Source of the DNA: Dendrobates tinctorius
Lineage: Eukaryota
Assembly (NCBI RefSeq): GCF_039654945.1
Contig: NW_027361924.1
Location: 4,154,001-4,218,000, forward strand
Reading direction: 5' to 3'
Length of the DNA: 64,000 nt
Shown here: positions 10,857-64,000 of the stretch, in pieces
Layout of the letters: the number at the start of each line of letters is the position of its first letter
Position numbering within the stretch: position 1 is the first letter of the stretch
Notes under the pieces: generated by a model
What the model was told of the DNA's origin: nothing
What the model saw: only the letters and a program-made list of their open reading frames with translations
The model's database searches: none
Position numbers and translations under genes: made by a program

Positions 10857-10925
10857 CTAAGCATGTCGAGGTGAGGAGACTTAAAGCCGCAATGCTCCTC
10901 TGGGAAATATGCTAATTATGCAAAT
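10857..10925 (-). promoter_or_regulatory. snRNA-type promoter module inside retrozyme A (octamer x2, SPH/ZNF143 site, PSE-like box)
   Basis: Minus strand: ATTTGCAT-A-ATTAGCAT-ATTTCCCAGAGGAGCATTGCGG...CTCACCTCGACATGCTTAG. Confidence 0.6.
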
Positions 10926-11056
10926 TGTCTCTTCAGAGAAGAAGAGGACTAGAACTCTAGTGCCACCTATTGGAGGTAGCAATCCTAAAAGTCAATGTTG
11001 ACCCTTTAACGAGCCTAGTTACATGACTTAGGATAAAAGCCAAGCCAGAATCTCCA

Positions 11057-11101
11057 TTTGCAGACACTGTGTTTCGGGGTACTGCCCCTCATCAGTGCAA
11101 A
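11057..11101 (-). ncRNA. Type I hammerhead ribozyme
   Basis: Minus strand reads UUUGCA-CUGAUGA-GGGG CAGUA CCCC-GAAAC ACAGU GUC-UGCAAA. The core and stems I and II are intact and stem III is short (ACAC A GUGU). Predicted cleavage is after GUC, between 11063 and 11062. Stem I extends with bulges to about 11039/11123. Confidence 0.92.
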
Positions 11102-12554
11102 GTGGGAGAAGATCTGGTTTGGCTGTGAGAGAGGCGTCTGACCGATATCCAAGAAGTATCATTTCTCCTTGCAGAGAATAACATGCTATGAGGGGATGTC
11201 AGGCAACAAATCCCTAAAAACGACTTGTCGTTATCTTAAAGAACATGTATCCTTTCCATAGTATAGATGAAAAACGTTTGATCGTTGGGGGTCCGTCTGC
11301 GGAGTCCACCACCGATTCCAAGACTGGGGGGTCCAAATTTGGTTGTACGGCTAGTGACAGTAGAGCTGTGGTCACTCATTACTTCATCTTTGGACCTTGG
11401 TTCTCATGATCGGTGGTTGTCCCAAAGAAGTGATGCAACTAAACATCAGCGAAAGAAAAACAAGTGCAATATTTGCAAATAATCAATGTGACCACAACAA
11501 ATGTCCCTGATACAGGCAGGAAAGAAAACACTGCAGCGCTAACCATGCAGGACCCCAGAGGTCTAGGGGACAGATTACTCGTCATTCCTCGCAGATTGTT
11601 TTTCTCCAAGTTCTACCTCCAGCAAAGTTTACAGTAATCATTCAGCAAAAAGTGGTGAAAGCAACTGAGCGACACTAATGTGAATATAAAGTGTCAGCAG
11701 CCGGAGACCAGAGACAAACCGGTCCGGACAACCCTATTGTACGCCTGACAGCGGCGGCTACAGAAAGGCAGCAGGTGGAAAGAAGAAGCATTGTTGTGAC
11801 CGGACCGAAGACGCTTTCTGAGAACAGAACCCTTAGAACAATTACAATTAAAAATAAGTAACCCCCCCCCCCATGTGGAAGCGAATTATCAGAGCAGGAG
11901 AGAACCGGCCCTCGCTGAACATAGCAGATTCGCACTGATAAGTGAAATACCAGGTTAATGTATGATCGGTCACCTTGGTCAAAGGGCCGGAAAAATATTG
12001 AGCAAACTGGAGACAAAGGAGGAGGGGAAAATTTTCACTATATACAGAAGTGGAATATTAAAAGAAAAGGATAAATACAGACAGAAAACTAATGTCTTCT
12101 GTGTGAGCAACATAAGGATTACTATGGCGTCGGCCACCAATGACACACAGGAAAAGCAGAGAGGAAGGAAACAATTCACAGCAAATCTCCACCCAAAGCG
12201 AAAAAATTACATCTGCTCATGAGCGGATCAGCGGAGGAAGGACACACGGGACGGAAATCAGGCGGAAGAAATCTGACTCGGATTTTGCAATAAATCTGTA
12301 AAAAAGACAATACCGTAGGAATTACTCATACACAGACACAATAACGAGCCGGTGACACAGCTGGATCTCAAAACACCACAGTTTAGAGGGGGAGACGGCC
12401 GTCAGCCCCCAGAGACAGAGAGCAGATTGACAAGACGTCATACACTGGAAGAGGAGGAAGCTGCCCACAAATATCAGCAGCCCACCTACCATCTACACAT
12501 AGTAAAAAGTACAAAGCGAGGAGCACTGTAAATATCTTATATAGACCTCTATTG

Positions 12555-18944: not shown

Positions 18945-21900
18945 CTCCTGTTCCCGGGGCCCCTCTGTCCCGCTGTGTGAAACCCGCTACCCACCCCGGC
19001 TCGGGCCCTGTGGTGGGTCCGCAGCGAGGGAGCGGGGAGAGAGATGACTGTTGTGACCTGACTGTCGCATCTGGTGACAGTTCAGACCAGGGAAGTGACA
19101 TGGAGGTCGGTGCTGGTTGTGGTCTTGGTGGTGGTGTCCAGGCTCAGCCCTCGGTGGCAGGGGGGGCTGGTCTGGCACCAGGTAAAGTTGGTACAGCCAG
19201 GGCCGCACCTCCGGCGGCGAGTGCTGGGGCTTCTGGACCCCCACGTACGGATCCGCTAAGTCTGGATCGCTAGTGGGGGTCCAGAAGCCTAGGAAGGGTG
19301 AACAGAACACCAAGCAGCAGCTGAGGCAGTGCAAAGTGCTGGTCGCTCCCATGTCGGCGCCTGTGGTGAAAGCGGGGTCTCCGGCACGTCGACCCAAAAA
19401 GGGGTCCGTGCAGGGGGCTCCGCCGCCGCTAGGCGACGAAGGGGAGTGGCCGGCCTTGCCTGACTCAAGTGGTGGACATAGGGTGGCGGCGGTGGTCCGT
19501 GAGGGGGGCGTGGCCTCCCCGAGTGTTGCCCGGCCTGCAAAGGCTGCGGCATGCGCGGGGGGGGGGGGGCGTGTCCTCCTCGGCCGTCGTCCCACCCGCT
19601 GCGTCCGTGTTACCCGGGGGGGGGGGGGGGGGCGTGGCCTCGCAAGGGGTCACTGCTCTGCCCGTGGTGGCCTTGACTGGTCGCGTCACCCGAGGGGCCG
19701 CGGCTCTGCCTGGGGTGGCTGCGACCGGCGGGGGGGGGGGTGGGGGTTTCGCGGCCACCCACCCTTCCAAGTAATGCTGTGCTGCCCCCAAAAGCTGGTG
19801 GGGAGTTGTCGGGGTTCCCGGTCCACCTACCTTCATCTGAGGGTGCGGGGACTCTGGCGCTCCCTGGCAAGCCGGCGGCGGGGGTGAAGAAAAGTGCAGG
19901 GCAGGGAGTGGTGCCAGTGGCCGTCCCTGCCCAGAGTAATGAAAGCTCAGCAAAAGAAAAAAAAAAAAATGGAGCTGAAACCAGGAGCTGCTGTTGCTCC
20001 TAGGCCCAGCCAGGGCAGTGTGCAGGATGTCATCAGCACTGAGGCATTTAAAGGGGCAGCGGCGCTCCTGGACAGGAGCTGGAGTAGCTCCCAGCAAGAG
20101 AGCTCGGGGCCCCCAGCAGGCAAAGAGAGGAACTGCACTGGTTCAGGAAAAGTAAATAATGTAAATAATATTGCTATGTACACCAATTGTTCGAGTGAGA
20201 ACGAAAGCGGAGTGGACATATTTAAGGAGATGTTTGCTGAAGTGAATGGTGATATGAGTGACATGGATGAGGGAGTGAGTGCTAGTGTGAATTTGGGTGA
20301 AAGTGCTGGAGTGAATGCTGGGGTGAAAGCAAATAATAGAAGAGTGAATGGGAGAGTGACTGGGAGGACGAATGAGGGTGCTGGCACAAGTGGTGGGATT
20401 TCCTCGCCTCCGGGCTCCAGGGACGGCGTTTCGCACTGCCGTTTCCTGGAGGCTCTCAAAAGGGGAGATAGATCAATAGTGGTAGAGGGGAGGACAGTGG
20501 ACTTGTCTTTCTGGATAGAGAGACACGGCTTTGCTGCCTTCCAAAATCAAAGGGAGGGAGGGACTGTTTGGTCTCTCCCCACAGCCGGGCAGGGGCCGCC
20601 AAGAAGGAATGTGGTCCGTCTTAGGTGGGGGGGGGCAGTGAAGCTTTCCCACCTAGGAGCAAGGTAGTGGAGCTCCTCCTTAAGATGAGCTTTGGGGCGA
20701 ATGACATCTTTGCCCTGATACATCCTTCGGCGTCCAGCTTCTTCGACATCAGCTTTGTGCGGCCAGAGGGGCTTGAGCTCTTCTGGTCGAATTACGAGCT
20801 GGTGCGAGAAGAGCCCGGATGGCGAGACTTCGTGGCTCAAGCGGTGTCTCGCCAAAATTCCGTCAAGCGAGTGACCATGGTTACATGTAATGAGTCACTC
20901 GCAGGCGTGGACATCATGACGTGGCTTTCCCGTTACGGGGAGGTCACCGAGGTCCCAAAAAAGAACAGGGACGAGTTCGGCATCTGGTCGGGGGGGGGGG
21001 GGGCTGGACCTTCATGGTCAAATTGAAGGTTTCCAGCGGCACGGTCACCCACATCCCTTCCTCTGCGTTCCTGGGAAGGGACAGGATCCTGGTCTTCTAC
21101 CAGGGGCAATCGAAGGTCTGCCAGAAGTGCGGCGACCCCACCCACTTCAGCGCCAACTGCAAGGTGTAGAAGTGCGCATTGTGTGATGGGGTGGGTCACC
21201 TGGCCGCCTTGTGTAAGGATACTCGGTGCCACCTGTGTGGTGACCTAGGTCACCCTCTCAGCCGCTGCCCTCGCTCTTTCTCTAATGCCGCCGCAGGCCC
21301 GGTGGGGGGAGACCGTGGGGGGGCAACCCCCGGTGGCGCTTCTGCTGTGACAGGTGGTGGCGGAAGGGCTGAGGGGCCAGTGAGGAAGGGCAATGCTGCA
21401 AGGGGCCCCGCGTACCAGCGGAGGCAGGAAAAGCGCCAGGGAGGTAAGGGACAGGTGGAGCCTCGGGCCACCGGGGTGATGCCTGCTCCTCCCTCCAGGC
21501 CCGTGGCCAAAGCCTCTGAGGCCCTGGGGGAGAGTGCGGTGAGTGAGGAGATCAAGAGGATGGAGAGAGAGGAGAAAGCGGCTGACTCAGACGACTCCTC
21601 TCGTTATGAAAGTGTCGACGAGGATGTCAGAGAGCAGCCTACAGCATCAGGTGGCAAAACCAGGCGTGCCAAGCGCAAAACGGGGGGGGGGGGTGGAGAA
21701 TGCTGACAAGCCTTCAAAGTCTCCCCCGCCCCCGACCACCAGGGTGCACACGGATCAGACTCTCCAACTGGTTCAGCGCCCTCGGAGGTTCAGATGATGA
21801 GCCGCAAGACGAGGGTGCGGGGTCAACACTGGAGGGTCCTTCAGGGGATGGCGGAGTCCATCCCTCAGGGGGAACTGTTCCTCCTGAGGGGGGGACAGAC

Positions 21901-22051
21901 CTGGAACCCGGGGGGGCGAGGACACCGAGGGTGGGGGGGTGGGATGGACACGTCGGGAGCTTCCCTGAAAAGGAAGGTGTCTGACCCCTCCCCAGGTGGA
22001 GGCGATAGCGGGGCAGGGAAGAAACTGGCCATCCAACTCGATCACCCATGA
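18945..22051 (+). pseudogene. Tx1 ORF1 (gag-like), frameshifted
   Basis: RRM-like segment VVELLLKMSFGANDIFALIHP...FDISF; knuckles CQKCGDPTHFSANC, CALCDGVGHLAALC and CHLCGDLGHPLSRC; in-frame TAG at 21167-21169; frameshifts mostly at G runs. Confidence 0.8.
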
Positions 22052-25000
22052 TGGCTGAACTCGCCCCGTTGACGCTGGCGTCCATTAATGTCGCCAGCAT
22101 TAAGTCAGATGCGGCTCGCTTCACGGCCTTTGATTTTTTTCTCCCGGATTGAGGCAGAAATTTTATTCTTGCAAGAGACCAGACTAACAGACATGGGGGC
22201 CATCTATAAAGCACAGAGGGAGTGGAGGTGCGGGCCCTCATACTGGTCTCTTGCGGCCGAGCCGTATAGCGGGGTGGCTTTTAAGACTGCAGCTGTTGAA
22301 TGCTGACGGGTTACTGAGTTGGAAATGGGGAGGTGCCTGATCCGTCTTCATGAGAGGACAAGAGCTCCGGCTCATCAACATCTACGGCCCGCAATCCAAG
22401 TGGGACCACAAATGTCTCTTCCTGAGGATCAAGCCCTTTCTTTTTATGAGCCGGCAGGTGGTCTTCGGTGGGGACTTCAACACCATTACGAGGTCCCGTG
22501 ACCGGGGGGGTCCCGGAGATCGCCTGGCTTATGATAGCGTTGCGTTGAATAGCATAGCCAGTGAAGCTCGCCTGGTGGATGTCCATATCCGGCACACCCC
22601 AGGTCACGGGGGTTTCACCTACCATAGGGGTAGCAGTAGGTCTAGAATAGACAGGTTTTTTTTGAAGGAGGACGCCATCTTTTCTGCTGTGTCCGCCGTT
22701 GAGGTGGAGTTCTCGGACCATTGTTTAATTTTCTTTTCTCTGAATGTTGCAGAGACTCCTCGGATGGGAAGAGGGCTGTGGAAGCTCAATTCGTCCCTGC
22801 TGGAAGAAGCGGAGGTGAGACAATCCTTCGAGGATTTTCTTCAGAGCCAGGTACCGCTGTTGGATCTCTGTAGTAGTAAGTCAGAGTGGTGGGAGATTTT
22901 CAAAAAGCGGGTGGCGGGGTTCTTCCGTCAGCTCTCGAGCCTCAGGAGTCTGAACAGGCACCGCTTGTACCAGGCCCTGGGGAGGAAACTCGAGCAGCTT
23001 GTCTCGACTGGAGGTGACCGTGAGGAAATCTCCAGAGTGAAATCTTTACTCAAGAGGTGTCAGTATGATAAACACACATCTTTGGTTTTTGAGAGGGACT
23101 TCGGGAAGTACCGCTCGCCCGACCCTTACAGAAACTGTAAGATGTCAGTGAATTGTAAGATGGTGACAGGACTGATCGACAGTACGGGGTCCCTGAACAG
23201 ATCCAAATCAGGGATCCTGGAGGTGGTCAGATCCTTCTACTCACAACTCTTGGAAAAGAAGGATCTGGATCAGGACAGGATGTCGGCTTTCCTGGCTGAA
23301 ACCGTCCCTGAGCCAGGGGGTGATCCCTCTCTTGGTGTTTTGGCAAAAGAAATCAGGGAAGAGAAGTGAGACTGGCCATTGATGGGCTTCGGCCCAAGAA
23401 ATCGCCAGGTCCGGATGGCTTAACATCCGAGTTCTAAAAGACTTTTAGGGACTCCTTGGTCCCCCTCTTGACAGGGGTATTTAATGAGTGTCTATCCTCG
23501 GGCACTCTTCCCGACTCAATGAGGAAGTCAGCCCTCATTATTCTGTCAAAGGGTAAGGATCCGTCCCGTATCGAGAATTGGCGTCCCATAGCGCTTCTCG
23601 ATACGGACCGGAAGGTTCTGGCCAAGGTGCTGTTTAATCGGCTGGTGAAGTTTGCACCCCGGCTCCTTTCAGGGGCCCAGCATTGCTCTGTTCCAGGCCG
23701 CAGTACTTCTAGTGCTGTGCTCGGTGTCCGAGAGGCAGTGGAGCAGGGTAGGGCAGGTCACTGGAGGGGGTACTTGCTGTCATTAGATCAAGCGAAAGCC
23801 TTTGACCGGGTCAACCACGAGTACCTCTGGTCCGTCCTTTTGGGAGGTTTGTAAAATGGTTAGCGATCTTGTACCAAGGGGCTGACTTTTCCGCTGGTGA
23901 ACGGTTGGTCAGGTCACCCTTTTGAGGTGGGTTCTGGGGTCCGTCAGGGCTGTCCGCTGAGCCCGCTTTTATACGTGTTCGCGATCGATCCCTTCCTAAG
24001 GAGGGTAGATCGTGGACCGTTGGCAGGAGTCGGGATGGACCAGGCGGGCTCTGGGTCCTCTCTGAGGGTGGTGGCGTACGCCGATGATGTTTCCCTTTTC
24101 GTGTCCTCGAGAGGGGAGGCGGATTGGGTCATGTCGGAGGTAGTGCGCTACCCGGAGGCATCCGGGTCCATGATCAACCAGGATAAGTGTGAAAGTCTCT
24201 GGCTGGGAGGGGGAGATCCCAGGTTTGATCTCCCGGACACCCTTCCAGGGCCCCAGGCCACCGCCAAAATTCTAGGCATCGAATTTGGCCCCGGGGATTA
24301 CCCCCAGCAAAATTGGGAGGGCAGACTTAAGATCGCCACCCAAAAGGTGGACCAATGGAAGGGTTGGTCTTTAACCCTGAGGGAAAGGGTTGCCCTGGCT
24401 AAAGGCTTTCTGCTACCTTTATTAATATACCTGGGCAGTGTGTGCATCTTGCTGGAACCTCTCTGGACACGAGTCTATAGCCTGTTCTTCCAATTGTTAT
24501 GGGGGAATAGGCTTAACCTAATCAAGAGGGAGGTTACATACCGTACGAGGAGACTAGGCGGGTTGGGTATGGTCAACCCGGTGGTGTTTCTAGTAAACAC
24601 CTTTCTTAAGACTAACATCTCCAACCTCTGGCTAGAGAGGGCTCCTCCGTGGGTAGTCTCCTGCAAGGGTTGGCTTTGGCCTTTCTTCCAGGAATGGGAG
24701 ACAGGAGGGCAGGTGAAGGACCTACGCACACCTCAAGGCATCTCCCGGCTTACGCTACCCCGGTTCTGAAGGTGATCCGCCGGTGGGGTCTGGGAATTTG
24801 GGAAATCAGGACCATGTCGAGGCAATGCCTTGACAGGAGGGTCCTGTTGACCCATTTCCAGAAGCCCCTGGCCCTTAAGGATTGCCCAGGCCGGGATCTG
24901 GAGGTCGGGCTGGGGCTTTTAAATTCTAAGCGGATCCCCATGAAGTTTTGGGACTTGACCTGGCGTTGCTTCCACGGGAGGCTGTATGTAAAGGATAACT

Positions 25001-25413
25001 TGAAGTGCAGGAAATCCGATGATCGGGGTTGTCCCCGTGAGGAGTGTGGCGACGTGCTGGAAAGCATGGAGCACTTCCTGCTTCAGTGTCCCTTTAATGC
25101 AGAGGTGTACAACAGGGTGGGTGCTTCCATACGTTGGCCGCGGCTGGCGTCCCTCTCCTACGCTGAGTGGGCCTATGGAGCGTTCAGATCCCTGGGTGGC
25201 CGGGACCCGTGCACTTTATTCCTAGTCAGTGTAGTGGTTAGGTTCTACACTTGGAATGCACGGTGCCTAGTTTTGACGCGGAAAAAAACCCTCCCAAGGG
25301 ATGAGGTGGTAGGAAACATCTTGGGTGACCTGGTGAAGGTCTGTTCTTTGGAGTTCGAAAGGTTGGGTGTGAGGAAGGCCTCTTGGCTTTGGAGAGGCCT
25401 CTCCTTTGAATGA
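22048..25413 (+). pseudogene. Tx1 ORF2 (APE endonuclease - reverse transcriptase - CCHC), frameshifted
   Basis: LASINV, LQET, GGDFN, RIDRF, FSDH; KSPGPDG, NWRPIALL, LDQAKAFD, GVRQGCPLSP, YADD; CPREEC...HFLLQC. Confidence 0.93.
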
Positions 25414-36195: not shown

Positions 36196-37994
36196 ATAAA
36201 TTCATGTATAGCAGCACACAGATTGGTTTCTATGGGTTGCTCATCCACTTTTCCTTTCAATGGTTTTGATAATGTGACTGATACTGTTTGTTGTCAGGGG
36301 AACTGTGTTTGCCCTGCGTTGTCACGGTAACCACATTTCCTGGGATATGGGTTGTCAGAGATACTGCTTTGGTTCTGAAACACAGGTTGTCAGGGTTACT
36401 GCCTCTGTCCAGGGAGCTAGGTTGTCAGGATTATAACCTCTGTCCTGAGGCATAGGTTGTCAGGGTAGCTGCCTTGGTCCTGGGAAACAGGTTGTCAAAA
36501 TTACTGCCTCAGTCCTTCGACAAAGGTTGTCAGGGTTACAGCACCATCCTGCGACTAAGGTTGTCAGGGTTACCACCCCTGTCCTGTGACTAAGGTTGTC
36601 AGGGTTACCGCCCAATTATGTGACTAAGGCTGTCAGTGTTACGGCCCCGTTCCTGTGAGTAAGGTTGTCAGGGTTACCGCCCCTGTCCTGTGAGTAAGGT
36701 TGTCAGGGTTACCGCCCCGTCCTGTGACTAAGGTTGTCAGGGTTACCGCCCAATTATGTGACTAAGGCTGTTAGGGTTACGGCTCCATTCCTGTGAGTAA
36801 GGTTGTCAGGGTTACCACCCCTTCCTGTGACTAAGGTTGTCAGAGTTACCTCCTCTGTCCTGTGACTAAGGTTGTCAGGGTTACCGCCTCTGTCCTGTGA
36901 CTAAGGTTGTCAGGGTTACCGCCCAATTATGTGACTAAGGCTGTCAGGGTTACGGCTCCGTTCCTGTGAGTAAGGTTGTCAGGGTTACCACCCCTTCCTG
37001 TGACTAAGGTTGTCAGAGTTACCTCCTCTGTCCTGTGACTAAGGTTGTCAGAGTTACCGCCTCTGTCCTGTGACTAAGGTTGTCAGAGTTACCTCCTCTG
37101 TCCTGTGACTAAGGTTGTCAGAGTTACCGCCTCTGTCCTGTGACTAAGGTTGTCAGAGTTACCGCCTCTGTCCTGTGACTAAGGTTGTCAGGGTTACCGC
37201 CTCTGCCCTGTGACTAAGGTTGTCAGAGTTACCGCCTCTGTCCTGTGACTAAGGTTGTCAGAGTTACCGCCTCTGTCCTGTGACTAAGGTTGTCAGAGTT
37301 ACCGCCTCTGTCCTGTGACTAAGGTTGTCAGGGTTACCGCCTCTGTCCTGTGACTAAGGTTGTCAGGGTTACCGCCTCTGTCCTGTGACTAAGGTTGTCA
37401 GAGTTACCGCCTCTGTCCTGTGACTAAGGTTGTCAGAGTTACCGCCTCTGTCCTGTGACTAAGGTTGTCAGAGTTACCGCCTCTGTCCTGTGACTAAGGT
37501 TGTCAGAGTTACCGCCTCTGTCCTGTGACTAAGGTTGTCAGAGTTACCGCCTCTGTCCTGTGACTAAGGTTGTCAGAGTTACCGCCTCTGTCCTGTGACT
37601 AAGGTTGTCAGGGTTACCGCCTCTGTCCTGTGACTAAGGTTGTCAGAGTTACCGCCTCTGTCCTGTGACTAAGGTTGTCAGAGTTACCGCCTCTGTCCTG
37701 TGACTAAGGTTGTCAGAGTTACCGCCTCTGTCCTGTGACTAAGGTTGTCAGGGTTACCGCCTCTGCCCTGTGACTAAGGTTGTCAGGGTTACCGCCTCTG
37801 CCCTGTGACTAAGGTTGTCAGGGTTACCGCCCCTGTCCTGTGACTAAGGTTGTCAGGGTTACCACCCCTGTCCTGTGACTAAGGTTGTCAGGGTTACCAC
37901 CCCTGTCCTGTGACTAAGGTTCCCCGGGAAGGAACAACCACGGAAAGGGCAGTCTCCAATGAAGGAAACCACCTATGCCAAAACATGGTATCCA

Positions 37995-38038
37995 TCCACA
38001 GACAGCTGTTTCGGGGTATTGCCCCTCATCAGTGTGGA
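37995..38038 (-). ncRNA. Type I hammerhead ribozyme (intact core)
   Basis: Minus strand UCCACA-CUGAUGA-GGGG CAAUA CCCC-GAAACAGCUGUC-UGUGGA; palindromic stem III ACAGCUGU; predicted cleavage between 38001 and 38000. Confidence 0.92.
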
Positions 38039-38332
38039 GTAGGAAACTGGCCAGTAGGAGCAATGCCTAGTAAAAGACTGTGAAAATGAGGATGAGTGAC
38101 CTCATGGAGATCAACATCCAACACTGCGGAGACACCATCACATGTTTCTCAACGCAGTGATTCTAGAGCAATGCCCCCATCCCTTATGGGAAATATGCAA
38201 AACATGCAAAACAGAAGCCGCGGAGACACCATCACATGTTTCTCAACGCAAGCAATGACCAGCGAGGTCATTCATTCATCCTCATCTTCACAGTCTTTTA
38301 CTAGGCATTGCTCCTACCAGCCAGTTTCCTAC

Positions 38333-38376
38333 TCCACATTGATGAGGGGCAATACCCCGAAACAGCTGTCTGTGGA
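38333..38376 (+). ncRNA. Type I hammerhead ribozyme, C3U core variant
   Basis: UCCACA-UUGAUGA-GGGG CAAUA CCCC-GAAACAGCUGUC-UGUGGA; predicted cleavage after 38370. Confidence 0.85.
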
Positions 38377-39912
38377 TTGTTACCATGTTTTGGCATAGGT
38401 GGTTTCCTTCATTGGAGACTGCCCTTCCCGTCGTTGTACCTCTTGGGGAAAGACCTGGCTGGTCATTGCTTGCGTTGAGAAACATGTGATGGTGTCTCCG
38501 CGGCTTCTGTGACTTAGGTTGTCAGGGTTACCGCCCTGGTCCTGTGACTAAGGTTGTCAGGGTTACCGCCCTGGTCCTGTGACTAAGGTTGTCAGGGTTA
38601 CCGCCCTGGTCCTGTGACTAAGGTTGTCAGGGTTACCGCCCTGGTCCTGTGACTAAGGTTGTCAGGGTTACCAACCTGGTCCTGTGACTAAGGTTGTCAG
38701 GGTTACCAACCTGGTCCTGTGACTAAGGTTGTCAGGGTTACCGCCCTGGTCCTGTGACTAAGGTTGTCAGGATTACCGCCCAGTCCTGTGACTAAGGTTG
38801 TTAGGGTTACAGCCCCAGTCCTGTGACTAAGGTTGTCAGGGTTACCGCCCCAGTCCTGTGACTAAGGTTGTCAGGGTTACCGCCACTTCCTGTGACTAAG
38901 GTTGTTAGGGTTACAGCCCCATCCTGTGACTAAGGTTGTTAGGGTTACAGCCCCAGTCCTGTGACTAAGGTTGTTAGGGTTACAGCCCCAGTCCTGTGAC
39001 TAAGGTTGTTAGGGTTACAGCCCCATCCTGTGACTAAGGTTGTCAGGATTACCGCCCCATCCTGTGACTAAGGTTGTCAGGATTACCGCCCCATCCTGTG
39101 ACTAAGGTTGTTAGGGTTACAGCCCCAGTCCTGTGACTAAGGTTGTCAGGGTTACCGCCCCAGTCCTGTGACTAAGGTTGTTAGGGTTACAGCCCCATCC
39201 TGTGACTAAGGTTGTCAGGGTTACCGCCACTTCCTGTGACTAAGGTTGTTAGGGTTACAGCCCCAGTCCTGTGACTAAGGTTGTTAGGGTTACAGCCCCA
39301 GTCCTGTGACTAAGGTTGTCAGGGTTACCGCCCCAGTCCTGTGACTAAGGTTGTCAGGGTTACCGCCACTTCCTGTGACTAAGGTTGTCAGGGTTACAGC
39401 CCCATCCTGTGACTAAGGTTGTCAGGGTTACTTCCTCTGTGCTGAGCCAGGTTTTCGGGTTCTGGGACGGGGTGTGTGGCACAGTTGGCGGTCTCTGACC
39501 CCACCACACTGTAGCATATGGTATTTGGCTCCATCCTCTGAGGATCTAGAAAACAGCGATAAAAAAAGGACAAAAAAAATGTAGAATACAAAAAAGAAAA
39601 ATTCCTTTCCACCAAGAGAAAAACCCCAAACATATCTGGTATCAGTGGGAGCGTAAAGTCCGATCTGTGGAAATATAACACCGTCATCTGTGCGAAGGAG
39701 ACCTGTGGCCCCGACGCTCCACGGCCCCCGCAATAAGGACAGAAGAAGCCACCGGAAGACGGTGAAAACATCGGCTGCACAAAGCTCAGGAGATAGGCGC
39801 CGGGTTTTTTAATTTTTTTACAAAGTTCAAAATTGTTTAAGACGCAAAATATAAAACCGTCTCACGCCGCCGTCCTGAGAATCCGATCACCAGCCACCGC
39901 ACCAGACACAGT

Positions 39913-51243: not shown

Positions 51244-54200
51244 TCAAATCTTGTATAAAATGCTGGGGATGTAATCAAATCTGAGCACAGGAAGCAGCTG
51301 CGTCCCCGATTCTCTTAGATAATGCATTTTGAGCAGTTCCGAGAGGTATTCTACGATCTTACTGTCCTCGTGGGAGAGGCCGAGGAGCTGCTGCAGGAAG
51401 GCGACGCGGCGCTGGGTTATCGACTCCTCGCTCTCCTTCTCCCGGATGGGCAGGTGGACGTGGTGGCAAAAGGTGAAGAGGAAGGCCTTAGCGCTGAGCT
51501 GGGTCAGCATGCTCTGCACGTGCATGTAGTAAGTGCTGCCCTTCCTAATCTGTGTGCGGTGGTCTGCCACCCTCTGGAGGAGCGTCCCTCTGTACACAGG
51601 GCACCGCAGTGTCTTGTTGTCCGCATCCAATATGCTGGCGTACCGGCTGTATCGGCTCAGGGTGTGCAGAGTGTTGGATCCGGAAGGAGAGACCCCCCTA
51701 CGAGATGAGAAGAAAAAAAAAAGTTATTAAAAAGTAACAAAGTTCTGAAACTTTTCAACTGCATCTTACCATTTAAGAATTCTGCTTGCTATCAGTGAAT
51801 GGAAACTCACTTATATAGTCACCGATTCATGATGGACATGACCAGGAAAACGTTTGCATTCCCTGACAGCTAGCAGAAGTCGGCATAACCCCATTTTTTA
51901 TTTTTTTTTTATGTTAGGCTCCCAACAGCTATCACAGTCCGGGTGGAGCAATAAGTCAGAAATCTAGCTCCTATGTCAGGGTTCCACTCTGTCCTCCTAT
52001 ACTTTACACTGCAGCTCTGCTCGCTCAGATTTTATACCCACAAACCCAGTGGGACTCCATTATGTGGAGAGGGGCTTCAGAGGATTAGAAAGCAGCGAGG
52101 ACCATTCTCACATTGTCAGTGATGTAGAACAACCGACTCCCTGAAGAGGGGGAAGAAACCAAACAGGAGGTCGAGGACACGGAGTAAATTGTGTAATGGC
52201 TTCCGTTACTGCCTCCTAGAAACTGATAATGCAGATATTATCTAATATGGAGAAGACTTGATTCATAATAGTCGGATCCCGAGGATAAAGTGGGAAGCCA
52301 CCTTTGGGGAAAAAATATTTTTTACCGGTACTTAAAAGCATGAAATTTGAGCTAAATTTTTAGCTCAAATTTCATGCTTTTAAGTACCGGTAAAAAATTG
52401 AAAAAGTAATTTTACTTTTGCAATTGGATTTCATTTAAAATCTCTATAGCCTCCGTATTTTTACTGCCTATGAATGAGTTAACTGAGCACGTCCTGATAA
52501 GAGTTTTCAGCATGGGAAATATAAATGTACAGGGAAACATCAGCGTGAAAAAGCAAAAGGTATAATGAAAGCCAATTGCAAAAATGATATTTAATCCCAA
52601 ATACATGCATTTAAAAATGATAGTTCCTGTAAGTGGAAAATCCTTTTAAGGATAACTTCACAAGGGATGAAAATCCACAGATAATCCGCACATATAACAA
52701 GAGATTAATTCACTGCACATTTCTCCTCTATATAGGAAGAGATGAAATCCACAGTGAATATTTGCACCAGAGATTCAGAGCGCAGGGCAATTACCGCAGC
52801 CGGAGGATGAGATTTCCTCCACACAGCTAGTACTCAGTACCACACAAGTATGGGGACGTTTTTCAGGGTCTTTACCTCTGAAGTCCAATCAGTTTCCACT
52901 TCTGGAAATCCATGACGTGCAGGGGGGAGGTCACCCACGTCTTGATGGGTTTGGCTACGTGTCCATTATTAGGGACAAACACGGACAACGCCGTCACAAG
53001 TTTTTTCACAAAGGCTTCCTCTTCGCCCAACACAACGAGGGTCCTCCCGCTGAGCAGAGAGTAAATGGCGGGGTGAGAAAAGGGGTACTGCCTGATGAAC
53101 ATCAGAGCATTTTGGCCGGCTTTCCTTTTTTGGCGTTCGGTGATGGTGGCAACGGGGGGAGGGGAAGGTGTCCTATCGGAGCAGGTGGAAGCGCCGCTTC
53201 TGTAGCTGGTGGAGTCCTCGTCCACAGTCATTTTTCCAGCGTCCCTGCTACTCAATAGGTAGTTGGACTCAGGAGGAGCGGGGCTTTCCCCGGATGGGTC
53301 GTCCACTTGCTCCACGTAGAATTTCACCGAACCGAACATATGGCTGATGTGCCTGCCAGCCTGAGGCGGCATGCTGACTACGACGCCATCGCTTGGCACA
53401 AAGTCTCCGGCTAACTCGTCAAGAATGGGAGACTCAGTCCGTATACAACAGGCCGGGTCCACAGTCAGATCGACCTCGTTGGCTTGATCATTGTCCTTGA
53501 AATTGGCACAGTCCTCACCCTCGGCAGAGGTCTCCTCTTCGTTAATGGCTATTTGGTAAGAGGCTCGAAAATCTTCAGGGATCACAGTTTCGGATGTACA
53601 AGTACTAAGGACTTCAATGCTGTCCTCGCTGATGGTCCTCCGGCTGCCGGATTTCCGTCTGGACTGCGGGCTTGGATGAAGCCTCAGGCACGGCTGACTC
53701 TCCGAATGGACGAGGAGCGTAGACTTCTCAGTCTGTAAAACCTCGATGCTGTCTCCACTGCTCACACTCCCTTTGGTCTCTGCCTCGAAACCCTCTGTGT
53801 TGCTGGTCGCCTCATCCTGGTCATCGTCGAACGCCTCCTGCTCAATTTTAATCCGCACAGACTCCACGCTGGACTTGTAGGACTCCACACTGACCGAGGG
53901 CTTCATGTCTTCTGCCGCTTTAGCAGCACTCGGCTGGTTCAAATATTGCCTAGCGATCGGTTTAAGAGCCAAGGTGGAGACGTCCTCAAAGAGAAAGTTT
54001 GCAATGGCTTGCTGCCCTAGGAGGGTTCTGTCCAGGTGGCTCATGACTAAGTAGCTGACGTCGCCCCGATAGCGCTTCTCGATGGCCGTCAGCAGGTCCA
54101 TCGTCTGGGTGAAAAAGTAGACGTCCACCAGCTCCTCCAAGGTCTTCAGCTTCTTATCGAAACACTTGGAAGACTTGGCTTTGATGAATTTGGGGGTGTA

Positions 54201-55070
54201 GGAGGAGCGAGGGGTGTAGACCTCCGGGTCATCGTCGTCACCTTCGTGGTCGGAGGTGGTGACTGGGTCCGGCACGTATGGCTGGTAGTCCTCCCCCTTT
54301 AGGTGTCGGTATGGGTAGGACTGGATCTGTCGCAGGAGGTCCTGGTGCTCGATCATGGACTTCTCCACGTTGCCCAGCTCGTTGGCCTTCTCGATGGCCT
54401 GGGTGGTGTAGAAACCCTGGTGGTCCGTCTTCTCCTGCTCTTCCATCTCGTCCAGGAGGACGCTCCGGGTGTAGTCCAGGTCCTTTAGCTTCTTCTCCAG
54501 CTCGTTGGCGAACGCTTTGCGGTTTCCAGTCTTGAGACATTCGGACGCCTTGGAGAAGTCGCCCGAGAGCTGCAGGAACTGCTCCATGATCTTGTCCTCG
54601 TCGGTGGAGATGTAGGCCATGCAGAAGGGGCGCACGAAGCCTCGCGCTTCCAGGTCGTACAGCGTCAGGTGGTGCACGTAGGCGAACGCCCCTTCCTTGG
54701 AGTCGCCCAGGACCACCTTGGAGTCCTCCACGAAGTTCAGCTTGGGGTACGAAGACCCTGGGGGGTGACCCACGAACGAGGCCTGGTAGTCCACCGACAT
54801 GATGCGCAGGGAGAAGTAGTTGAGGTCGAAGGCACCGCGGACGCGGGGGTCGTCGGGGACGGTGAGAAGAGGCTGTGGCCCCACCTGCTCCGAGAACTCC
54901 GAGATCAGGATGAAGTCCCTGATGAATTTGGCCCCCGAAAGCCGGGACCAGGGGCTGCTCTCTGGAAACAGCGGCACTGAGTACTCCTCTGGGAGCCCCG
55001 GGGAGTCCTGCAGGGGGCAGTCATACTCCTCATCGCGGGTAAACGCCACCACATCCGGAGAGCCGATCAT
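51244..55070 (-). CDS. SMCR8: SMCR8, DENN-fold subunit of the C9orf72-SMCR8-WDR41 complex; 882 aa, 2 coding exons
   Basis: Exon 1 55070-52876 (MIGSPDVVAFT..., EFSEQVGPQP, LYDLEARGFVRP, ...KLIGLQR; donor AG|GTAAAG) and exon 2 51697-51244 (GVSPSG...SRYSRYASILDADNKTLRCP...SILYKI*). Phase-2 junction; 2649 nt total. Confidence 0.97.
52317..52398. repeat. Perfect 82-bp palindrome (40-bp arms, 2-nt spacer) in the SMCR8 intron
   Basis: ATTTTTTACCGGTACTTAAAAGCATGAAATTTGAGCTAAA-TT-TTTAGCTCAAATTTCATGCTTTTAAGTACCGGTAAAAAAT. Confidence 0.92.
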
Positions 55071-59788: not shown

Positions 59789-61275
59789 ATGCCTAACTCT
59801 AAGGCTGAGCGTGGCCGTCCGCCGGCCCCCACGGGCTCTTTAGTCCAGTTCTTCACATGCTCCTCTTGCAATCGCAAACTTCCCTCAGGTCAGCCTACTC
59901 CCCTCTGCCTGGACTGCAGCAATCCCATTCAGCAAGACCCCGTCCAGGAGCCATCTATTGCGTCACGTGGAAGCGATCCCCCATTCCTGGTTGGGCCTCG
60001 TCTCTTTCACAATCTGTGGCAGACCTCACCAGGGTGTCTCAGTCCCTAGTAGCCGTCCTTGATAAGTTACCCCTGGACGCTTCTGCAGGGTCCAGCAGGT
60101 CACATGAAGCTCCATCTGAGCCAGCCAGCAGAAGCCGCAAAAGGCCCAGACAGGATCTCCGGCCGGGATCCCCTCCTGGCCTCACATCCCCAAATAGTCC
60201 TTCCCAGCAGTCGCCCTCCCGTGCCTCCTCACCCGAGCCAGGTGAAGCGTTCTCGGATTTGTCATCCGAAGAGATCTTAGAGCTGGATTCGGACCAGGAC
60301 GCGGACATGAAGGTTACGGTACAGAACCTCATTGCTGCGATTAACCAGACCTTCGAAATCTCAGACTCCCCTGCGAAATCCTCAGAACAGGAGGTTTCAT
60401 TCAGACGGCCAGAAACACCTTCCAGGGTCTTCGCCTCCCACTCTGAGTTTGGCAAGATCCTTACCAGGGAAAGAGAAAATCCAACCAGGCGCTTTCAAAG
60501 AGGGAGGCGCCTCAGCGTGCTGTACCCGTTTGCCAAAGAGCTCACCGACAACTGGTCTGCTTCCCCCTCGGTAGACGCACCCGTGTCCAGACTTTCTAAC
60601 AACACGGGCCTCCCGATTTCAGGTGTGGCGTCACTAAAGGATTCTAATGATAGAATTATAGAATCTTTAGCAAAGTCAACATTCGAAGCGGCTTCAGCAG
60701 TGCTAAGCCCAGCCTTTGCTTCATCTTGGGTAGCGAAGGCCATAGCCACTTGGGCAGAGGATCTCCGCAAGGGCATCGTAGATAAAGCCCAACCAGAGCA
60801 ATTGGCCGAACTGGCCAACCAGATCTCTCGTGCAGGGGATTATCTGCTCTCTGCCTCCTTGGATGTCGCGTCTTGCGCAGTTCAGGCGTCAAGCAACGTG
60901 GTAGCAATCCGACGTACAATTTGTCTCAAGGCTTGGCAGGCGGATTTGTCTTCAAAAAAGTCCCTTACCAATCTGCCTTTTCAGGGAGCGCGTCTCTTCG
61001 GATCCTAGCTGAACCAGATTATTAAGGACGCCACTGGGGGCACGAGTTCCCTCCTCCCTCAGTCCAAGCCTCGTAGACCTCTGCTAAGACGTCAGTTTCG
61101 GCCCTTTCGGACTTTCCGCCTCTTCAATGCGGCAGACAACTTCTCTAACCAACAGAGACCGCAGGCACGCCAGGATAGAAAAAAGGTGTCCTTCAGACCC
61201 ACTCCCTCCTGGCGATCTCACAACTCCCAGGGCAGATCCTCCAGATCCAGATCTGGACGGTCCACATCTGCATGA
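59789..61275 (+). pseudogene. DIRS1 ORF1 (gag-like), disrupted
   Basis: N-terminal CSSC...CLDC; SVDAPVSRLS, LKDSNDR, KAWQADLSSKKSLTNLPFQGARLFG; frameshift near 59.98 kb and TAG at 61006-61008. Confidence 0.8.
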
Positions 61276-61907
61276 CTATCAACGAACTCCCGAGGGTCCT
61301 TACCAATTGGGAGGTCAACTCCTTTTCTTCAGAGACGTCTGGCTTGCCTCAGTAGAGTACCCTTGGGTCAGGGAAGTTGTATCATCAGGATACAAGATAG
61401 AGTTCGTTTCTCGTCCCCGGGATCGTTTCTTCGAGTCCCGACCTCCAAAAGATCCTGCCTTAGTTCCGGGGTTCTTTGCGTCCATCGCCTCTCTCCTCAC
61501 TTCTGGAGTGATTGTGCCCGTTCCCGAATCAGAACGTTTCACAGGGTTTTATTCAAACCTGTTCGTGGTGCCGAAAAAAGGCGGTACAGTTCGCCCCATC
61601 TTGGACCTCAAGTTACTCAACAAGAGAGTCCGACTGCATCATTTCCGAATGGAGTCTCTTCGGTCGGTAATCGCTTCCATGGAAACACAGGAGTTCATGT
61701 GTTCAATAGACATTCAAGATGCATATCTACATGTTCCCATATTCTCCGGCCATCAGAAATTCCTGCGTTTCACCATTCGCCAGGAACACTACCAGTTTGC
61801 ACTGCCGTTCGGTCTCGCCACCGCACCCAGAGTATTTAAAAAGATCATGGTGGCGTTGATGGCCTTGTTGAGAATCAGAGGTCTCGTTCTTTTTCCGTAC
61901 CTCGACG
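61127..61907 (+). pseudogene. DIRS1 reverse transcriptase, interrupted at YLDD
   Basis: GYKIEF, GFYSNLFVVPKKGGTVRPILDLK, FRMESL, IDIQDAYLHVPI, LPFGLATAPRVF, PYLD then an insertion. Confidence 0.9.
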
Positions 61908-64000
61908 CACTGGCGTAGCGCTGGGGGGGGCGGTCCGCCCCAGGCGGCATGTGTGTGGGGGCGGCGCGGCAGCAGCAATTCCACCCTGCAGTGCAGTGCA
62001 GCGGTGGGCAGGGAGCGATGCGATCACGGCAGCTCCGCTGCCTGCAAGAGTGAATAGCAGGAGCGGAGCGGCAAGGGTCCGTCCTGCTTCCTGCCCGGAG
62101 GCCGCGCTTCCTGTTTCACACAGAGGAGCGCCGATGAATGACGTCATCATTCAGCGGCCGCTGCTGTGTGAGGGAGGAAGCGCTGGCGATGCTGCGGACA
62201 GGTGAGAGGAGAGAGGTGGTGTCTTGTGTGTATGTATGTGTGTATGTATGTATGTCTGTCTCTGTGTGTGTGTATGTCTGTGTGTATGATGGAGCAGGCA
62301 GTGATGGGAGTGATGGTCTAGAAGGCAGTGATGGGGTGAAGGAGCAGACAATGATGGGGGTGATGGAGAAGGCAGTGATGGGGTGATGGAGCAGGCAGTG
62401 ATGGGAGTGATGGAGCAGGCAGTGATGGGGGTGATGGAGCAGGCAGTGATGGGGGTGATGGAGCAGGCAGTGATGGGGTGATGGAGCAGGCAGTGATGGG
62501 GTGATGGAGCAGACAATGATGGGGTGATGGAGCAGGCAGTGATGGGGTGATGGAGCAGGCAGTGATGGGGTGATGGAGCAGACAATGATGGGGTGATGGA
62601 GCAGACAATGATGGGGTGATGGAGCAGGCAGTGATGGGGTGATGGAGCAGACAATGATGGGGTGATGGAGCAGACAATGATGGGGGTGATGGAGAAGGCA
62701 GTGATGGGGTGATGGAGCAGGCAGTGATGGGAGTGATGGAGCAGGCAGTGATGGGGTGATGGAGCAGGCAGTGATGGAGCAGACAATGATGGGGTGATGG
62801 AGCAGACAATGATGGGGTGATGGAGCAGGCAGTGATGGGGTGATGGAGCAGACAATGATGGGGTGATGGAGCAGACAATGATGGGGGTGATGGAGAAGGC
62901 AGTGATGGGGTGATGGAGCAGGCAGTGATGGGAGTGATGGAGCAGGCAGTGATGGGGGTGATGGAGCAGGCAGTGATGGGGTGATGGAGCAGGCAGTGAT
63001 GGGGTGATGGAGCAGACAATGATGGGGTGATGGAGCAGGCAGTGATGGGGTGATGGAGCAGGCAGTGATGGGGTGATGGAGCAGACAATGATGGGGTGAT
63101 GGAGCAGACAATGATGGGGTGATGGAGCAGGCAGTGATGGGGTGATGGAGCAGACAATGATGGGGTGATGGAGCAGGCAGTGATGGGGTGATAGAGCAGA
63201 CAATGATGGGGTGATGGAGAAGGCAGTGATGGGGTGATGGAGCAGACAATGATGGGGTGATGGAGCAGGCAGTTATGGGGTGATGGAGCAGGCAGTGATG
63301 GGGTGATGGAGCAGACAATGATGGGGTGATGGAGCAGGCAGTGATGGGGTGATGGAGCAGGCAGTGATGGGGTGATAGAGCAGACAATGATGGGGTGATG
63401 GAGAAGACAATGATGGGGTGATGGAGCAGGCAGTGAGGGGAGTGATGGGGGTGATGGAGCAGGCAATGATGGGGTGATGGAGCAGACAATTATGGGAGTG
63501 ATGGAGCAGGCAGTGATGGGGTGATGGAGCAGACAATGATGGGAGTGATGGGGGTGATGGAGCAGGCAATGATGGGGGTGATGGAGCAGGCAGTGATGGG
63601 GTGATGGAGAAGGCAGTGATGGGGTGATGGAGAAGGCAGTGATGGGGTGATGGAGAAGGCAATGATGGGAGTGATGGGGTGATGGAGCAGGCAATGATGG
63701 GGGTGATGGAGAAGGCAGTGATGGGGTGATGGAGAAGGCAGTGATGGGGAGAAGACAATGATGGGGTGATGGGGAGAAGGCAGTGATGGGGTGATAATGA
63801 TGGCAATGATGGGGGTGATGGAGCAGGCAATGATGGGGGTGATGGAGCAGGCAATGATGGGGGTGATGGAGCAGGCAATGATGGGAGTGATGGGGTGATG
63901 GAGCAGGCAATGATGGGAGTGATGGGGAGAAGGCAGTGATGGGGTGATGGAGAAGGCAGTGATGGGGAGAAGACAATGATGGGGTGATGGTCGAGAGGGC
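61908..64000. mobile_element. Probable hAT-type non-autonomous element with a long internal minisatellite; runs off the window
   Basis: Starts CACTGGCGTAGCGCTGGGGGGG (CAGTGGCGTA-like TIR) exactly where the RT frame breaks; the far end is not visible. Confidence 0.6.
62287..64000. repeat. 23-27-bp minisatellite (GATGGAGCAGGCAGTGATGGGGT / GATGGAGCAGACAATGATGGGGT)
   Basis: More than 60 variant units; source of the spurious HHCLLHHP ORFs. Confidence 0.96.

Follow-up and report, generated by a model that had tools for sequence, protein, structure and literature searches.

In Penelope-like element (PLE) insertions, a 5'-truncated copy lies inverted and one end bears a tail (PMC8557442). Their inverted junctions show overlaps and palindromes, the head-to-head arrangement is the commonest, and the duplications measure 8-10 bp; the terminal repeats alone suffice for trans-mobilization of unrelated inserts (PMC3846280). 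Poseidon of Anolis, as a purified protein, cleaves both strands of DNA and extends them, and it initiates reverse transcription at two internal positions (PMC11167929). Vertebrate retrozymes have been argued to be non-autonomous PLE derivatives (bioRxiv 10.64898/2026.07.22.740005). The canonical metazoan type I hammerhead has a helix I of 6 bp, a helix II of 4 bp and a helix III of 1-2 bp with a palindromic loop of 2-4 nt (PMC4209133).

We analyzed a locus of Dendrobates tinctorius (GCF_039654945.1, contig NW_027361924.1) within a window of 64,000 nt (4,154,001 to 4,218,000, forward strand), and the features described below are collected in Table 1. A 587-nt insert (37922-38508) breaks up a 35-bp minisatellite. 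Our best explanation, to which we assign a probability of roughly 0.6, is a dead, one-off retro-insertion of a 351-nt retrozyme (of the amphibian non-LTR type, a non-autonomous PLE derivative) that a Penelope-like reverse transcriptase/endonuclease carried out in trans.

Table 1. Positions in the window of the insert, its parts and the surrounding satellite
Feature	Position	Strand	Basis or description
Host minisatellite array	36384..39431		Period 35, 87.5 copies (Tandem Repeats Finder) and unit-by-unit register
Left copy of putative 12-nt target-site duplication, GTGACTAAGGTT	37910..37921		Satellite unit interrupted after 12 nt at 37921
Left arm, one complete 351-nt unit	37922..38272	-	3' end at left flank, 5' end at center; unit end and start contiguous in right arm
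Hammerhead 1, type I, intact core	37995..38038	-	Core and helix mapping by hand and sub-threshold Rfam match
Internal 31-nt direct repeat, copy 2	38126..38156	-	100% identity among copies
Conserved 24-nt block TTTGCAT..GCATATTTCCCA, octamer-like	38187..38211	-	Common to 329-nt family, at same distance from ribozyme
Internal 31-nt direct repeat, copy 1	38220-38250	-	100% identity among copies
Near-palindrome, 19 nt	38254..38272		7-bp stem AATGACC/GGTCATT, 5-nt loop; start of unit, exactly at inverted junction
Junction of arms	38264..38275		4-7 nt shared (GAGGTCA or TCAT)
Right arm, 5'-truncated unit	38273..38508	+	Last ~177 nt of unit (to 38441-38444), then 64-67 nt of next unit; 3' end at right flank
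Hammerhead 2	38333..38376	+	Same as hammerhead 1 save U at 38339 (C3U)
Third copy of 31-nt repeat, right arm	38471-38501		100% identity among copies
Right copy of putative target-site duplication, GTGACTTAGGTT, one mismatch	38509..38520		Satellite register

Followed unit by unit, the satellite runs in the same orientation to the left and right of the insert, and its 35-nt register is regained on taking out 599 nt. An insert at 37920-38510 had been reported in a preliminary description of this DNA; it is indeed present, but its right end lies at 38508 and the satellite resumes with GTGACT at 38509, with 2-4 nt at this boundary that can be assigned to element or satellite alike. The 12-nt duplication is a reading from the satellite register, in a tandem array that does not permit proof, and a 23-nt deletion of the array would be the alternative. 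As read from the register, the duplication (12 nt, one mismatch) exceeds the 4 bp expected of retrozyme target-site duplications when these are present; here and below, the defining features of retrozymes are those of Cervera & de la Pena 2020 and Li et al. 2026.

The two arms of the insert have their 3' ends outward and meet 5'-to-5' (head-to-head). They share two inverted repeat pairs, one of 170 nt (37930-38099 / 38272-38441; 94% complementary, or 180 nt at 92.8% by BLAST) and one of 63 nt (38211-38273 / 38448-38510; 97% complementary). Segments run B-C-A along the left arm and A-B along the right one, an order that closes a 351-nt period and leaves no space for an ORF. The right arm, about 236-245 nt long, is colinear with a head-to-tail doubled left arm, and the seam contains no indel. 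Because the right arm crosses the unit boundary, the template would have been a circle or a multimer with a period of 351 nt. ORFs that overlap the insert measure 40-100 aa and lie on mixed strands, and the unit falls in the range of 170-400 nt that defines ORF-less retrozyme units with a type I hammerhead. Alignment of both arms thus bears out two earlier proposals, that an ORF-less, hammerhead-bearing unit of ~350 nt was inserted as an inverted pair and that the monomer closes into a circle.

Assemblies are known to have difficulty with tandem and inverted PLE structures (PMC8557442), and the locus lies inside a 3-kb minisatellite, both of which would favor a chimeric assembly, or else an inversion later than the insertion. 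We consider this highly improbable, since the arms are 94% rather than 100% identical, the junction unites unit positions that differ, with an asymmetric loop of 172 nt, so that the arms are not mirror images, and orientation and register are unchanged in the satellite on either side. A hairpin-read artefact in particular was rejected, as it would give a perfect, symmetric palindrome.

Every conserved core nucleotide of the left hammerhead, read on the minus strand from 38038 to 37995, is present; the positions mapped were C3 U4 G5 A6 N7 G8 A9, G12 A13 A14, the A15.1-U16.1 pair and H17 at the cleavage site. The core CUGAUGA is followed by a 4-bp helix II (GGGG/CCCC) with the loop CAAUA and by GAA, and the triplet is GUC. 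Helix I is formed by UCCACA/UGUGGA (6 bp) and helix III by AC/GU (2 bp), closed by AGCU as a palindromic loop; the sequence ACAGCUGU reads as a palindrome of 8 nt. All three helices have the dimensions of the canonical metazoan type I hammerhead (PMC4209133), and cleavage is predicted between 38001 and 38000. The C3-G8 pair of the hammerhead is known (PMC11167929), and the C3U change in the second hammerhead (38333-38376) would disrupt this pair, so that this copy is probably impaired. In the predicted dimer fold of the right copy, the double-hammerhead helix can be seen. This core mapping agrees with the earlier assignment of one intact hammerhead and one C3U variant.

The window contains two occurrences of the pattern CTGATGA-N(8-38)-CGAAAC, where chance would give 0.04. 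At gathering thresholds, Rfam gave no match to either hammerhead or anywhere else in the window, and the only match in a permissive scan was Hammerhead_3 at 16 bits, below the cut-off of 48.5; the ribozyme assignment therefore rests on the manual mapping of core and helices. The isolated hammerhead motif is not unusually stable (z -0.9).

These features bear on whether the unit is a retrozyme at all. It could instead represent truncated terminal repeats (pseudo-LTRs) of an autonomous PLE, left by a heavily 5'-truncated copy together with its usual inverted partner. Most PLE insertions are strongly 5'-truncated, with a single terminal repeat left, and in Xenopus the sequences of retrozyme families are sister to those of PLE terminal repeats (bioRxiv 10.64898/2026.07.22.740005). 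Moreover, opposite-strand dual hammerheads lie 100-700 bp apart in truncated Schistosoma PLEs (PMC4209133), and the unit, as seen at a single locus, could be a piece of an autonomous element's terminal repeat. We nevertheless find this reading unlikely, because the segment order closes the 351-nt period without ORF space, the hammerhead has a helix III and a 4-bp helix II, as in the canonical form described for retrozymes, and is not the minimal long-helix-II variant of metazoan PLE repeats (PMC7229834, PMC4209133), and both unit length and ribozyme type agree with the axolotl 353-nt retrozyme. The insert contains no PLE reverse transcriptase or GIY-YIG ORF. Pfam scans of 8 of the 22 window ORFs of at least 180 aa detected LINE-type and DIRS/LTR-like reverse transcriptases only, with no PLE reverse transcriptase or GIY-YIG domain.

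A retrozyme copy in this state is unlikely to yield an active ribozyme. Folding the locus predicts a long hairpin (MFE -396 kcal/mol, z -29.7) with a stem of ~166-169 bp, which supports the dsRNA hairpin proposed earlier, although not its length of ~185 bp. In predicted read-through RNA from either strand, 43-44 of the 44 hammerhead nucleotides are paired to the antisense copy. Hammerheads with a 2-bp helix III and a palindromic loop are also reported to need a tandem partner (PMC4209133, PMC7229834). The suggestion that transcription of either strand would produce a ribozyme therefore appears unlikely, given a hammerhead buried in duplex, of a type that needs such a partner, and with one of its two copies carrying C3U. 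Retrozyme activity calls for at least two tandem units with complete hammerheads; here the two hammerheads are on opposite strands, and no tandem hammerhead pair occurs at the insert or elsewhere in the 64-kb window. Without two tandem ribozymes on one strand, the locus cannot release a circle, and it would be at best a dead offspring copy.

The outer ends of the insert fall at two unit sites, after ...CCCGGGGAA and after ...GCGGCTTCT, and these ends and the junction are all away from the hammerhead cleavage site 38001|38000, which points to uncleaved or religated RNA as the template. The 3' ends at the flanks, the unchanged satellite orientation and the register restored by the 12-nt duplication together argue for one integration event. 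As in PLE insertions, a partial tandem (64-67 nt past the unit boundary) accompanies an adjacent head-to-head copy (the inverted left arm), although this one-arm extension of 64-67 nt compares with 30-40 nt/bp reported for PLE tails. A palindrome (38254-38272) and a short overlap (38264-38275) lie at the inverted junction, as described for PLEs (PMC3846280). The near-palindrome is predicted to fold into a hairpin of -9.1 kcal/mol. If one permits a 4-nt slip of the TCAT type, the arms share GAGGTCA (7 nt) at the junction, and otherwise ~4 nt, so that the AGGTC microhomology placed earlier at ~38264-38269 was roughly right. The same account had called inverted copies typical of PLEs, and head-to-head insertions of this kind are documented (PMC8557442, PMC3846280).

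We infer from this geometry that both target strands were primed by a Penelope-like enzyme. In such a scheme, the 35-bp minisatellite target would be cut on both strands, 12 nt apart, and each 3'-OH would prime reverse transcription of a circular or multimeric retrozyme RNA, starting at two internal sites ~66 nt apart. The two cDNAs (351 nt and ~240 nt) would extend towards each other, and their 3' ends would be joined via 4-7 nt of complementarity beside the palindrome at the unit start. The outcome would be a head-to-head pair with the 12-nt duplication on either side. Twin priming of human L1 was reportedly described by Ostertag and Kazazian in 2001. Dual-strand priming has so far been demonstrated only in vitro, for one lizard element, which counts against our best explanation.

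Over ~240 nt, 7 transitions, 7 transversions and a single indel of 2 nt separate the arms, in keeping with the earlier remark that they diverge at multiple positions. The spacing of the differences is within random expectation, and five of ~7 CpGs, counted by eye, are kept in both arms. On sequence evidence, this pattern would have no power either way, and two different RNA templates and decay after insertion cannot be told apart from an arm difference of ~6%.

The preliminary description explained the inversion by a template switch between RNA molecules during integration. A switch between two sense RNAs would give a direct and not an inverted copy, and the idea is conceivable only with an antisense or cDNA acceptor. 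In that form it is covered, together with the self-priming model of Arkhipova et al. 2013, by a second explanation, self-priming or a switch onto an antisense template. Here the cDNA 3' end at the unit-start palindrome would anneal to TGACCTC on an antisense RNA, or fold back on a multimeric antisense strand, and copying would then yield the inverted arm. The 19-nt near-palindrome sits exactly at the junction, as this explanation would require, palindromes at inverted PLE junctions have been interpreted as indicating self-priming with an antisense strand as template (PMC3846280), and GAGGTCA/TGACCTC is found at both joined points. However, a simple fold-back predicts a right arm that starts with the junction-adjacent region B, whereas the actual start is ~170 nt further along the unit; fold-back on a target-attached cDNA would enter the satellite and not the next unit; and fold-back arms would be identical at birth, yet 14 substitutions separate these. 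We therefore regard antisense priming as doubtful, and simple snap-back of one cDNA was rejected on the first two of these grounds. Priming on both strands accommodates the outward 3' ends and the single duplication around the whole more simply than a template switch.

Two independent insertions, with the second copy entering or landing beside the first in the opposite orientation, are very unlikely. PLE proteins reportedly use their own repeats as nicking targets (PMC11167929), and the ~6% difference between the arms would fit separate arrivals. Against this, a single duplication flanks the composite, the inner junction has neither a duplication nor a satellite remnant, the inner ends have 4-7 nt in common, and both outer ends are 3' ends.

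Within the dual-priming explanation, the left arm is exactly one unit (351 nt, within 0-2 nt) and ends 78 nt from the ribozyme cleavage site. A tentative, and on balance improbable, refinement is that reverse transcription went once round a circular retrozyme RNA and halted at its own start, while the opposite DNA strand was primed on a second RNA. If true, the locus would be direct genomic evidence for circular RNA templates of animal retrozymes and for dual-strand priming by Penelope-type enzymes in vivo.

A second retrozyme family lies in the same window, at 10.8-11.2 kb. That the present unit belongs to a distinct family, as first proposed, is upheld, in that only the ribozyme and one 24-nt block are common to it and this 329-nt family. 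The block is identical at 21 of 24 positions between the families (0 of 500 shuffles reach its score), lies at offsets of 133 and 135 nt, and is a candidate internal promoter element. The 329-nt family is inserted as 1.12 units, in direct order, and has a duplication of 10 nt, which likewise suggests that its template exceeded one unit. No related copy of the ribozyme core was found among metagenome contigs; the sole match lies in a prokaryote-like coding context with only a 26-30-nt core in common and was rejected as unrelated. Two scans of viral contigs for ribozyme-bearing copies gave no match, and the core sequence was not found in a full-text literature search or in the supplement of PMC7229834.

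Taken together, the locus is a clear but unremarkable case of an already known type, in that its architecture matches that of PLE insertions and its unit matches amphibian non-LTR retrozymes. To our knowledge, mobilization of animal retrozymes by PLEs has been proposed from co-occurrence and phylogeny, and the integration step has not been seen so far. A clean single-copy insertion offers a nucleotide-level footprint that links the two, with head-to-head arms, a junction palindrome, a one-arm extension, a 12-nt duplication, no ORF and a closed 351-nt period, and it is consistent with the in vitro extension of both DNA strands by a Penelope-type protein. This is one locus only, and its worth would lie in a survey, across the genome, of junctions and end points like these.

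The closest counterparts of the unit are axolotl Rtz353/HHR_Amex2 and newt satellite 2 (PMC7229834), which, as described, are likewise ORF-less vertebrate units of ~350 nt. HHR_Amex2 shares the type I fold, in which helix I has 6 bp, helix II 4 bp and helix III 2 bp with a tetraloop, and by analogy cleavage as a dimer would be expected. In axolotl, too, a second family of ~330 nt is found alongside (329 nt here). Unlike the axolotl retrozyme, the present unit forms a single inverted composite and no tandem array.

The insertion itself resembles Pen2a_Av of Adineta vaga (PMC3846280) and the scheme of Craig et al. 2021 (PMC8557442), in which a head-to-head inverted repeat lies beside a direct one with an overlap and a palindrome at the junction. 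Shared with both are a one-arm extension, a duplication of ~10 bp, a hammerhead in the repeat and a simple-repeat target. In contrast to these, the repeats have no reverse transcriptase/GIY-YIG ORF between them or next to them, the extension measures 64-67 rather than 30-40 nt, and the complete copy is the inverted one while the truncated copy is direct. Anolis Poseidon (Frangieh et al. 2024, PMC11167929) and L1 twin priming offer parallels for priming by both target strands, for 3' ends that point outward and for an inner microhomology join, and Poseidon also for reverse transcription that starts at internal sites of multimeric RNA. The former is an autonomous element studied in vitro and L1 an unrelated LINE, whereas the mechanism here is inferred from one genomic footprint. 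Finally, the two facing hammerheads, ~330 nt apart, resemble the paired hammerheads of Schistosoma mansoni, which are 100-700 bp apart and ascribed to truncated PLE insertions (PMC4209133); unlike the minimal S. mansoni hammerheads, with their long helix II and no helix III, both of those described here are canonical.

The limits of the hammerhead-bearing insert can be read from its host minisatellite. In a unit-by-unit reading, the 35-bp array keeps perfect register as far as GTGACTAAGGTT at 37910-37921, is interrupted beyond 37921 and resumes at 38509 with GTGACTTAGGTT, in identical orientation left and right of the insert. Register is regained on deleting 599 nt, corresponding to a 587-nt insert plus 12 nt. 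These break points and the restored register place the insert at 37922-38508, with 2-4 nt at either boundary assignable to the element or to the satellite. From the sequence, we infer that a 12-nt target-site duplication with 1 mismatch would flank the insert. Within a tandem array a duplication is unprovable, hence the alternative that the array lost 23 nt instead of gaining the 12-nt duplication. Between 37400 and 38800, satellite unit variants read ...CCGCCTCTGTCCT or ...CCACCCCTGTCCT to the left of the insert and ...CCGCCCTGGTCCT to its right. The insert may mark, or may itself have produced, a limit to array homogenisation.

The left arm is a 351-nt minus-strand sequence (38272 to 37922) in the segment order B-C-A, and the plus-strand right arm carries A followed by the initial 64-67 nt of B. 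Aligned with the left arm doubled head-to-tail, the right arm is colinear through the seam, with no indel there, which gives the order A to B to C to A. On these grounds, we read the template as having repeated at 351-nt intervals and the left arm as a single complete unit, to within 0-2 nt, in agreement with the inverted pair and circularly closing monomer of the preliminary description. BLAST lengthened the first inverted pair to 180 nt, and an alignment of ~240 nt shows 7 transitions, 7 transversions and one 2-nt indel between the arms. In each arm the 3′ end is outermost, at the flank, and the 5′ end is central. The AGGTC microhomology proposed for the junction holds in part: the joined points have GAGGTCA in common if a 4-nt slip is allowed, but only ~4 nt otherwise. 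A 31-nt segment occurs twice per unit, 94 nt apart (38126-38156 and 38220-38250), and again in the right arm (38471-38501). The three copies are identical, each with a small GAGA/UCUC hairpin in the predicted whole-locus fold, and the segment may serve in protein binding or as an initiation signal.

Coordinates of the insert, its hammerheads and other features of the window
Feature	Position	Strand	Remarks
Minisatellite	36384-39431		35-bp unit
Inverted pair 1	37930-38099 / 38272-38441		170 nt, 94% complementary; repeat finder
Inverted pair 2	38211-38273 / 38448-38510		63 nt, 97% complementary; repeat finder
Left-arm hammerhead	38038 to 37995	minus	mapped core and helices
Right-arm hammerhead	38333-38376	plus	as left copy, but U at 38339 (C3U)
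Junction centre	38264-38275
Near-palindrome	38254-38272		19 nt, AATGACC-AGCGA-GGTCATT; unit start and site of arm junction
24-nt block	38187-38211; 10901-10925		351-nt unit; 329-nt family
Third hammerhead core	11071-11095	minus	part of 329-nt unit
LINE remnants	19894-25410		AP-endonuclease, RVT_1 and zf-RVT domains; between 86-bp satellite arrays
732-aa ORF	52875-55070	minus	Folliculin/SMCR8-type domain; nearest Atlas clusters chordate SMCR8
ORFs	59857-61915		LAP2alpha-like match and RVT_1 domain

Both insert ends and the arm junction lie away from the ribozyme cleavage site, and the template was therefore an uncleaved multimeric or a religated circular RNA. The insert geometry is the architecture published for Penelope-like elements (PLEs), whose insertions favour simple repeats and pair a direct copy with an inverted 5′-truncated one, one end bearing a tail (PMC8557442). 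Their inverted junctions show overlap and palindromes, head-to-head being the most frequent form; duplications are 8-10 bp, and unrelated inserts are mobilised in trans via terminal repeats alone (PMC3846280). The purified Anolis Poseidon protein cleaves and extends both strands, and its reverse transcription begins at two internal sites of multimeric RNA (PMC11167929). Vertebrate retrozymes have been argued to be non-autonomous PLE derivatives (2026 preprint, bioRxiv 10.64898/2026.07.22.740005).

Because geometry and literature agree, we favour a single integration event in which both target strands primed cDNA on retrozyme RNA. Two target 3′-OH ends, 12 nt apart, would each prime a cDNA, and short complementarity would join the two. 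Such two-strand priming would account, with no extra assumptions, for the duplication at the flanks and for 3′ ends that face outward. A switch between two RNA molecules, as first proposed, could produce no inversion unless the acceptor were antisense. Plain fold-back was also rejected: the right arm begins ~170 nt from the start it predicts and enters the next unit, not the satellite.

Read-through RNA from either strand is predicted to form a 166-169-bp duplex between the arms (MFE -396 and -387 kcal/mol; z -29.7 for the minus-strand RNA), a long hairpin as anticipated, but shorter than the suggested ~185 bp. Of the 44 hammerhead nucleotides, 43-44 are predicted to pair with the antisense copy in this structure. 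With this pairing and no tandem partner, transcription of either strand is unlikely to yield a ribozyme. Lacking a tandem partner on the same strand, the locus falls outside the published definition of an active retrozyme and is most readily viewed as a dead offspring copy. Its hairpin could feed small-RNA pathways.

The other hammerhead family comprises 1.12 direct 329-nt units on the minus strand (11187 to 10818, within 10808-11197), with the 10-nt duplication ATCCCCTCAT on either side; this insertion likewise needs a template exceeding one unit. With both units rotated so as to begin at the cleavage site, similarity between the families is confined to the ribozyme and a single 24-nt block, TTTGCAT..GCATATTTCCCA, at offsets of 133 and 135 nt past the ribozyme. 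Block identity is 21/24, a score reached by 0 of 500 shuffles; the copy in the 329-nt family contains the perfect octamer ATTTGCAT, and the right arm ends precisely at the block's 5′ edge. Transcription of newt satellite 2 is reportedly driven by an octamer-bearing promoter of the snRNA type (Coats et al. 1994). By analogy, the block may be an snRNA-type promoter element, which we offer only as a lead.

Elsewhere in the window, the 732-aa ORF probably corresponds to the large SMCR8 exon of the host, and identifies that host as a chordate; likeness to published amphibian elements is the sole ground for placing it among the amphibians. Among structural neighbours of the RVT_1 ORF's top Atlas hit are clusters with Dam and RNase H domains, which suggests a DIRS- or LTR-type element rather than a Penelope-like one. 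On a metagenome contig whose coding context is prokaryote-like, an ORF is closely preceded by a hammerhead-like core (L001:1572-1601) that shares this helix II (GGGGCAGUACCCC); the contig has nothing in common with the retroelement beyond that core and was rejected as a relative.

The pattern CTGATGA-N(8-38)-CGAAAC has 2 exact matches against 0.04 expected, and the hammerhead motif thus exceeds chance. It scores 16 bits against the 48.5 required by Rfam, and in isolation shows no unusual stability (z -0.9). Both are usual where helix III is so weak, but still count as a failed test. As initially described, one core is intact and the other carries C3U. In the left hammerhead, helix I (UCCACA/UGUGGA) is followed by the core CUGAUGA, helix II (GGGG/CCCC, loop CAAUA), GAA and helix III (AC/GU, loop AGCU), and C17 precedes the second helix I strand. 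All conserved core positions are intact, with the predicted cleavage site falling between 38001 and 38000. The sequence ACAGCUGU forms a palindrome of 8 nt, and double-hammerhead pairing was found in the predicted dimer fold. The right copy differs only at 38339, and we expect it to be impaired because this change hits the C3-G8 pair, where uncompensated changes abolish cleavage (PMC11167929).

Taken together, the preliminary observation is confirmed and its interpretation partly supported. The left hammerhead fits the canonical metazoan type I description, with helices I, II and III of 6, 4 and 1-2 bp and a palindromic 2-4-nt loop on helix III (PMC4209133), and resembles HHR_Amex2, the ribozyme of the axolotl 353-nt retrozyme (PMC7229834). 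The locus is a well-preserved instance of a familiar type: a hammerhead unit, either a retrozyme or PLE-derived, in a PLE-style head-to-head insertion.
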